The translations under genes and the position numbers were made by a program. DNA of 64,000 bases from Oculina patagonica. Lineage: Eukaryota. The notes under the pieces were generated by a model. That model saw nothing but the letters and a program-made list of their open reading frames with translations. It was not told the DNA's origin and searched no databases. This document shows, piece by piece, positions 23,864 through 24,750 of the stretch (its first letter is position 1; each line of letters starts with the position of its first letter). The DNA lies in the NCBI RefSeq assembly GCF_052425735.1, contig NC_135764.1, positions 9,796,001 to 9,860,000 on the forward strand, in the 5' to 3' direction.

Positions 23864-24750
23864 TCAACCGCGGCTTCGGCGTCTACGTCGGAAGAATCTT
23901 CGAAATCGTCGTCCACGACGGGATCTACGGCGGCGAATAAGTCGGCGAGCTCCGCGGAATATAAGGAAGGGCAATATTGGATCAGAAGACTTCTCAACCA
24001 ATTCCTTGTCCAATGGATTGTCCAAAGAGTTTTCTTCCTCGTCATCTGCATCTTCATCGTTATCGTTTTCGTCTTCATCGTGGCCATCGCTATCTGTTTC
24101 GTCCTCATCGAAATCCCCATTACCCTCATCCAACTTAGGGTTGCTGAACAAGAAACGAAAAAAAGAAAGAGAAAAAAATGAAAAATGTTTTACACGATGT
24201 CTTTAAACATTGGCGCTCACTACATCAAAAAATCACTTGCACAGTTCGACATAATCATAACTAGTTATAACACACACCAAAAACGCGGGTACAGTGGTAA
24301 ATATAAATGATCAACTAACATATGAGAAAAATGTAGTATAAAAAACTGCTTCTATGTCTCTGTCCTTTAAACGTTACATTTGAAATGCAAAAGGAAAGCT
24401 AAACTTGCTTTAAATTAGGATTGCTGTAGTCAAACCCCGAAATTCCTTCTTTTTAATTTGGACATTTTAAGTGTTTTCATATCATGCCTCGCCTAGAAAG
24501 AGAATAAACTGACCATATCTAAAAAAGCAAAACAGGTTACCCTTTTTAAATAAAATGCCTTTTTCTCTTCCTCTCTTGACATTCGTTTTTCTTCACGTAC
24601 AATCACACTTATTCCTTACCTCTGAGATATGTCGTTTCCAACTTGCTTCAGTTCACCTTCATACGCCTCGGCTTCATCGTCAGTGAATGGCAATGCCAAG
24701 CCTATAGCAAGCACAAAGCCAACAAGAGCTACAAGAATCAATCCTTTCAT
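23864..24750 (-). CDS. Type B(I) prepropeptide B1, 136 aa; exons 24750-24620, 24143-23864
   Basis: Signal MKGLILVALVGFVLAIGLA. Phase-2 intron CAGAG|gtaagg ... ttgttcag|C. Acidic pro-region, then SSDP-ILPFLIFRGARRLIRRRRSRRGRRFRRFFRRRRRSR-G*. TATAAAAA at 24805-24798. Confidence 0.88.

Follow-up and report, generated by a model that had tools for sequence, protein, structure and literature searches.

The Arg-rich stretch at 23864-23990 of the window (the whole 64,000-nt stretch of Oculina patagonica DNA that we analysed) is, on the minus strand, the 3′ end of a two-exon gene encoding P0001, a hypothetical O. patagonica protein of 136 residues (ACROYT_G024841). This gene, B1, is a small, transcribed and spliced coral gene, and the Arg-rich tail encoded by it and by the other type B copies is under purifying selection, hydrophobic head included. 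The family to which B1 belongs is an uncharacterised, taxon-restricted tandem gene family of stony corals, built like the precursor of an antimicrobial peptide. By analogy with known systems, we consider it probable that type B is an acid-masked, amidated, Arg-rich host-defence (antimicrobial) peptide.

The B1 gene, its copies and its family

Joining the two B1 exons (Table 1) yields a translation with 100% identity to P0001, the AG acceptor lying at 24144-24145 and the GT donor at 24618-24619 of the minus strand. Contig 17 (83 nt) of run X2 splices 24143 straight onto 24620, which is the predicted exon-exon junction. Both B1 exons are covered in runs X2 and X8, with zero depth in the intron bins from 24154 to 24580; that these two runs are RNA is the tool's guess, backed by the junction contig. 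The exon-only contigs of run X8 end near 24763, upstream of the B1 start codon, and a TATA-like box is located 48-55 nt 5′ of that codon. Runs X1 and X12 contain the B1 intron, as expected of DNA. Among public runs recorded as RNA, none contains the B1 stretch.

Related sequences from other samples carry the same elements. A TARA Pacific metagenome scaffold (L017) has a two-exon layout like that of B1, and a 1110-nt JGI contig (L018), which in our reading belongs to a metatranscriptome, encodes an unbroken homologue of 146 residues, P0016, with signal peptide, acidic part, SSDP and tail. The N-terminus of P0001 follows the pattern of a signal peptide, with Met-Lys, a 16-residue hydrophobic core and Gly-Leu-Ala (small residues at -3/-1), and an AlphaFold model places a helix at residues 2-19 (pLDDT about 88). 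From this predicted signal peptide, the type B precursor is presumably secreted.

Table 1 Positions of the type B genes and related features in the 64-kb window
Feature	Position	Strand	Remarks
Stop codon of B1	23864..23866	-	TGA
Tail of B1 (P0001:100-136)	23867..23977	-	37 codons; ILPFLIF head, Arg-rich stretch, C-terminal Gly
SSDP junction of B1	23978..23989	-	conserved presumed processing signal
B1 exon 2, acidic propiece portion	23990..24143	-
B1 intron	24144..24619	-	GT..AG, 476 nt; from sequence and junction contig
B1 exon 1	24620..24750	-	start codon, signal peptide (P0001:1-19), start of propiece; split codon at end
TATA-like box TATAAAAA	24798..24805	-	read from sequence; putative function
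B2 gene, B(I) type	33432..34316	-	exon 2 33432-33711, exon 1 34186-34316
B3 gene, B(II) type	45393..46339	-	exon 2 45393-45681, exon 1 46209-46339
B4 gene, B(I) type (P0004)	52765..53617	-	exon 2 52765-53014, exon 1 53487-53617; 10-codon deletion in propiece
B5 gene, B(II) type (P0003)	62323..63268	-	exon 2 62323-62611, exon 1 63138-63268
Type C open frame with exon 2	13935..14318	-	hydrophobic head and RVR segment absent from type B
Type A gene (P0013)	39072..39653	+	divergent, between B2 and B3; SSDRQ junction, shorter tail

The type B tails come in two variants. As an earlier sequence-only reading of this DNA had counted, Arg makes up 19 of 36 residues in B(I) and 21 of 39 in B(II), the terminal Gly being left out of both counts, and the copy identities it listed are correct at the protein level: the tails of B1 (23864), B2 (33432) and B4 (52765) are the same, as are those of B3 (45393) and B5 (62323). 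Where that reading saw LI replaced by LARRF, the variants do differ, and the difference can be stated more precisely as an Ala-Arg-Arg indel of three codons together with an Ile/Phe exchange. Most relatives (P0002, P0005, P0007, P0008 and P0016) have the longer form, L[AV]RRF, which therefore looks ancestral; the short head form is seen in another assembly too (P0010 and P0037).

A duplicated block of about 19 kb, comprising B(I), A and B(II), carries the genes of the window, and transposon remnants separate them. Flanks and introns of B1, B2 and B4 are about 95-98% identical, so the identity of these three copies partly reflects recent segmental duplication. Divergence between B(I) and B(II), compared over 23264-25350 against 44793-46939 and 61723-63868, is mosaic: identity is 91-98% in the 5′ flank and exon 1, about 77% in the intron and about 55% in the 3′ flank. 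This pattern suggests either gene conversion or that, in paralogues that are otherwise old, the promoter and signal-peptide end is constrained. The Arg-rich pattern exceeds chance: nearly all Arg-rich frame segments in the window are family members or their antisense frames, the sole exception being a short complementary pair at about 43049-43137. We rejected the plus-strand ORF at 23840-24181 as an antisense artefact of B1 codons, and the remaining Arg-rich plus-strand frames over the B genes as antisense of the same codons.

All matches to P0001 in the genome sit on one contig, at 9.736-9.933 Mb. The family cluster on this contig (9.736 to 9.94 Mb, roughly 200 kb) has at least 24 members, counted as open frames in the 210 kb read around the window. 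Family members follow one plan, in which an acidic stretch is joined through S-[SA]-D-P (or SSDRQ / SSGRQ) to an Arg-rich tail with a terminal Gly. The coding part of the type C frame spans about 13935-14213, and its signal-peptide exon was not found within the 64-kb window.

Beyond O. patagonica, searches of two very large protein collections returned only a small family. When 1.84 billion representatives were searched with a profile, 76 matched at E up to 0.001, many of these compositionally. Species with named homologues are Pocillopora meandrina, Stylophora pistillata, Acropora palmata and A. cervicornis, and weaker candidates are from Nematostella vectensis (P0090, E=5.5e-4) and the octocoral Paramuricea clavata; all of these proteins are annotated as uncharacterised. 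A Pfam scan of four members produced sub-threshold compositional matches only, an ESM Atlas look-alike search was uninformative (best score 0.75), and full-text searches with peptide strings, homologue accessions and arginine-rich coral peptides retrieved nothing relevant. Many HMMER matches with E above 1e-6 were rejected as poly-Asp/Glu plus basic low-complexity proteins. We likewise rejected as compositional a Haliotis rufescens protein, P0039 (2076 residues, E=8e-17), which has Lys/Glu-rich repeats and no DP junction; 15 of its stretches match the family profile, as repeated amphipathic basic modules.

Charge, selection and processing of the precursor

The type B precursor is divided sharply by charge. 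In P0001, 34 of the 80 propiece residues are Asp or Glu (43%), for a net charge of -30; across type B, the propiece carries -25 to -30 and the tail, which ends in Gly, +19 to +21. Ten full-length precursors of the family show an Asp+Glu share of 40-53% in the propiece, propiece charges of -20 to -49 and tail charges of +11 to +25, and their net charge after the signal peptide is negative in every case (10/10; -6 to -24). A correlation between propiece and tail charge was not relied on (Pearson -0.67, P=0.04; Spearman not significant; n=10, non-independent). In the tails of 31 members, Arg accounts for 48.6% of residues and Lys for 0.8%, and Asp and Glu are absent. Mutation in this region of 36% GC should favour Lys codons, yet the tails use Arg. 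Type B precursors have no Cys, and a C-terminal Gly is present in 47 of 56 tails.

Substitutions are distributed very differently in tail and propiece. Between B(I) and B(II) tails we counted 10 synonymous differences over 33 sites and 2 non-synonymous differences over 78 sites, whereas the propieces of B1 and B3 differ by 5 synonymous changes over 43 sites and 19 non-synonymous changes over 197 sites (binomial P=2e-4, Fisher P=8e-4 for the contrast). Over 25 codons that take in the junction, the head and the first half of the tail, comparison of B with a TARA homologue gave a pS of 0.47 and a pN of 0.056. The within-species counts, together with this low pN between species, indicate that the tail is held by selection. 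Among the tails of the five B copies, 12 codon columns vary synonymously and 1 non-synonymously, in addition to one three-codon indel. The propiece, in contrast to the tail, evolves almost neutrally: only its composition is kept, and a 10-codon deletion is tolerated in B4.

No dibasic (Lys-Arg or Arg-Arg) site separates propiece from tail; the junction is SSDP. When 17 diverse members are aligned, Asp98 does not vary, and conservation is 90% or more at Pro99 and at the preceding Ser. No basic residue beside the junction is conserved: of 56 members, 30 have Lys at position -5 and 16 have Glu, and Glu or Gln takes the place of the Lys in many. Asp-Pro is thus a real, conserved and non-basic boundary, as the sequence-only reading had proposed; its further suggestion, trimming by an X-Pro dipeptidyl peptidase, is only one of several possible routes.

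Four candidate routes may be envisaged. A cut further upstream could be followed by removal of Asp-Pro through a dipeptidyl peptidase, a post-proline endopeptidase could act at SSDP, cleavage could fall after Asp and leave an N-terminal Pro, or the junction could be opened by scission of the acid-labile Asp-Pro bond. PHM-type copper monooxygenase domains and DPP-IV N-terminal domains are present in the genome; their presence shows that amidation and trimming are feasible and does not discriminate between these routes. In promelittin, the acidic propiece is a strict series of X-Pro/X-Ala dipeptides, removed by a dipeptidyl peptidase without a basic site. The type B propiece, unlike that of promelittin, contains no such X-Pro/X-Ala run; in P0001 it is rich in Asp/Glu with few Pro or Ala, and only its final Asp-Pro fits, which excludes promelittin-style stepwise removal.

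The residue at +1 after the junction bears on where the mature peptide starts. It is Ile, Leu, Ala or Phe, and otherwise Gln. Gln occupies +1 in 5 of 31 tails and occurs 2 times elsewhere among about 1180 tail residues; the +1 cases are phylogenetically non-independent, yet they are spread over several diverged lineages, type A (SSDR-Q) among them. In cnidarian peptides, the usual pyroglutamate cap comes from Gln at the N-terminus (PMC7523074). The enrichment of Gln at +1, as for such a cap, and the conservation of the junction both support a mature N-terminus directly after Asp-Pro, at +1, which would be Ile in type B.

The contrast between a hydrophobic head and an Arg-rich remainder, set by the sequence-only reading against a simple helix, is real. 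Over the whole B(I) peptide the helical hydrophobic moment is no higher than in shuffles (0.30 versus 0.26, P=0.35), and B(I) is not a convincing amphipathic helix. Local 11-residue windows reach moments of up to 1.1, a central Arg-only, low-moment stretch being placed between two locally amphipathic segments. Corresponding whole-peptide values are 0.49 for B(II) (P=0.05), 0.58 for type A (P=0.08) and 0.53-0.57 for longer relatives (P about 0.01). In the low-confidence AlphaFold model, which was built from the 17-sequence alignment and is too poor for fold searches (mean pLDDT 60, pTM 0.20), the helix of the tail is confined to residues 100-112, with coil at 113-136.

A mechanism different from that of type A, which the same reading had drawn from this asymmetry, is unsupported: the tails of types A and B are homologous by alignment and have a common FRG[AT]RR core. 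The type A tail stops early where most members run on with RRRRSRRG, and type A looks like a C-terminally shortened family member. Relative to its nearest relatives (the P0005 type and type C), type B mainly lacks an RVRR-like segment between head and core. An I-x-P hydrophobic head with poly-Arg behind it is seen again in Pocillopora (P0043) and in other assemblies (P0010, P0037, P0042 and P0048), so type B is a conserved subtype and not an oddity.

A probable host-defence peptide and competing explanations

The case for host defence is that the layout of the family matches that of the Hydra arminins in charge, constraint, clustering, taxon restriction and transcription. Arminins are proven antimicrobial peptides with bipartite charge, encoded by tandem, taxon-restricted and fast-evolving paralogues (PMC10945409), and are confined to Hydra (PMC10945409). 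Like them, the coral precursors combine a signal peptide, an anionic N-terminal part and a cationic, Cys-free C-terminal part, and are encoded in one paralogue cluster. Unlike arminins, the coral family has tails that are about half Arg instead of Lys, a conserved SSDP and a nearly universal C-terminal Gly. The profile matches that we inspected were anthozoan DP-junction members or compositional, and no arminin homology was found among them; nor did Pfam, profile and Atlas searches find homology to characterised antimicrobial peptides. The coral family is analogous, not related, to the arminins.

As a host-defence peptide, type B would be produced in several steps. The signal peptide would be removed from the precursor first. 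The Asp/Glu propiece, whose charge outweighs that of the tail, most likely holds the tail in a soluble and harmless state within the cell that makes it. A protease that recognises a non-basic site would cut at or just after Asp-Pro, and the C-terminal Gly would give an amide, releasing a peptide of 36-39 residues with 53% Arg. The released polycation could then bind anionic microbial surfaces, with the hydrophobic head aiding membrane insertion or entry. We infer the exact peptide ends, the amidation and all activity of type B from features of the sequence.

How much of the tail remains in one piece is a separate matter. Within the B(I) tail, R-x-[KR]-R occurs six times in overlapping positions and Gly-Arg-Arg once (the single G-[KR][KR] site); because the tail is so full of furin-type and dibasic motifs, an intact 36-mer may not survive the secretory pathway. 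In a variant that we regard as unlikely but worth weighing, further cleavage of the tail by a prohormone convertase at Gly-Arg-Arg (P0001:121-123) would leave two smaller amidated products: P0001:100-120, a head peptide with about 21 residues, and P0001:124-135, an Arg/Phe peptide with about 12. Cuts at RRRR-Ser sites would fragment the tail more. Paralogue P0009 ends exactly at the aligned SRRG, which points to a natural C-terminus there, and Gly followed by basic residues is the classical cnidarian signal for amidation and cleavage (PMC7523074). The site is not conserved, however: the aligned Gly is followed by Ser-Ser in P0017 and P0021 and is missing in P0010. Purifying selection on both halves of the tail is compatible with either model.

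The same processing features bring the coral precursors close to those of signalling peptides. Cnidarian neuropeptides undergo N-terminal processing beside acidic residues, are protected by Gln or X-Pro and are amidated through Gly (PMC7523074). Like cnidarian preprohormones, the family has a C-terminal Gly (47/56), a non-basic N-terminal processing signal beside acidic residues and X-Pro, and Gln at +1, all of them typical of a preprohormone (PMC7523074). Neuron-derived antimicrobial peptides have also been reported in Hydra (PMC10945409), and type B might be a neuropeptide or hormone precursor, perhaps with secondary antimicrobial activity like some Hydra neuropeptides. We nevertheless think a signalling role improbable. 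The coral tails are 24-50 residues long and about 50% Arg, whereas established cnidarian neuropeptides are about 6 residues long (PMC7523074). Unlike cnidarian preprohormones, each type B precursor holds one polycationic tail of 36-39 residues, and the family has undergone a large lineage-specific expansion; at least 24 rapidly duplicating, length-variable paralogues are not the pattern of a ligand that coevolves with its receptor.

With 43% Asp+Glu in its propiece and a precursor predicted to be secreted, P0001 also invites comparison with the secreted acid-rich proteins that, going by titles in the literature, are used in the coral skeleton. The acidic segment might then be a calcification protein in its own right, or the whole polyampholyte a component of a coacervate matrix, with the Arg tail as counter-ion or targeting part. 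Such a role is very improbable: the propiece evolves nearly neutrally and can lose 10 codons, in contrast to the constrained tail, and there is a possible weak member, P0090 (E=5.5e-4), in Nematostella, which does not calcify.

Melittin has a hydrophobic N-terminal part, a basic C-terminal cluster and a C-terminal amide derived from Gly. Type B is laid out similarly, with a hydrophobic head, a basic tail, a Gly for the amide and an acidic propiece without a basic site, and cnidarians are venomous animals; a venom or cytolytic peptide, discharged from nematocysts or gland cells against prey or competitors, can thus be imagined. We give this very little credence, as the type B tail is far more charged than melittin, with a very low mean hydrophobicity (-0.93 versus +0.10), and the Pfam scan returned zero family matches although Pfam includes toxin families.

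Protamines are nuclear and have neither a signal peptide nor a propiece. Type B resembles them, and Arg-rich cell-penetrating and antimicrobial peptides, in containing >50% Arg, in its likely disorder and in its expected affinity for polyanions; unlike protamines, it has a predicted signal peptide and a propiece, and the Pfam scan turned up no protamine model with an E of 1 or below. Cell penetration and nucleic-acid binding, towards which the sequence-only reading leaned, are predictions from composition. A bolder proposal, which we hold to be distinctly unlikely, is that SSDP is a dedicated hexacoral processing code, unrecognised before, at which a specific enzyme cuts after Asp-Pro and releases amidated peptides of ~50% Arg, and that the hydrophobic-head products such as type B are cell-penetrating effectors. 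On this proposal type B would pass into microbes or into symbionts living inside cells and would attach to nucleic acids or ribosomes there, with no membrane lysis.

The coral antimicrobial peptides that PMC12496222 names as characterised by experiment, such as damicornin, AmAMP1 and digitiferin, are all Cys-rich ShK peptides, secreted and with proposed or shown activity against Vibrio (PMC12496222). Type B is like them a coral peptide with a predicted signal peptide and, unlike them, has no Cys and no ShK match. O. patagonica is the classic model for the bleaching of corals by Vibrio bacteria and for resistance acquired by an animal that lacks adaptive immunity. The type B family would represent a large, expressed and selectively maintained group of linear, Arg-rich peptides common to robust and complex stony corals. 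If the host-defence reading is true, these would be a new class of candidate immune or microbiome-shaping coral effectors, released at a conserved non-basic processing motif that could be tested by peptidomics; peptides active at seawater-strength salt would also be of practical interest.

Variants and fragments of the cluster

A perfect palindromic NF-kB-type site, GGGAAATTCC, is present at 25950-25960, 35547-35557 and 47550-47560, about 1.2 kb upstream of the starts of B1, B2 and B3; all of these are copies of a single, duplicated site. The count of NF-kB-type motifs in the window is not significant (10 versus 4.6 expected, with 7 of 100 shuffles reaching 10), and GGGAAATTCC may serve as a lead for immune inducibility only.

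Three family members lie within 10 kb of each other, in alternating orientation, on a contig of ERZ25067872 (L016:4079-13555), forming a small syntenic cluster. One of them is orthologous to the O. patagonica gene of FSDPQRRIRIR type, and another has an in-frame stop in its signal-peptide exon. These syntenic members, the FSDPQRRIRIR-type orthologue included, indicate that the cluster predates the species split.

Several sequences in and around the window depart from the family plan. About 11.6 kb upstream of the window (L006, G000:C7:9784112-9784405), a stop replaces Glu right before KSSDP in a B(II)-like copy whose downstream tail is intact; the copy is annotated as a truncated protein of 95 residues, P0006, and is probably a young pseudogene or the source of an acid-only product. 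What looks like a truncated piece of type A is present at 26746-26937 on the plus strand of the window: a tail of this type behind an SSD junction, lacking an acidic region and with no exon for a signal peptide close by. Two O. patagonica proteins encoded outside the window, P0012 and P0022, have the family signal peptide, propiece and SSDP followed by unrelated, non-Arg C-termini, with P0012 also sharing the first 21 tail residues of the family; this switch could reflect alternative splicing, a frameshift or misannotation.

Transposon remnants in the window include a reverse-transcriptase ORF at 18377-19960 on the plus strand (RVT_1, E=3e-35) and an ORF at 42150-43343 on the minus strand with a weak GIY-YIG match just under the Pfam cut-off. 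Masked runs of N occupy 10418-10562, 41649-41914 and 43869-44069.
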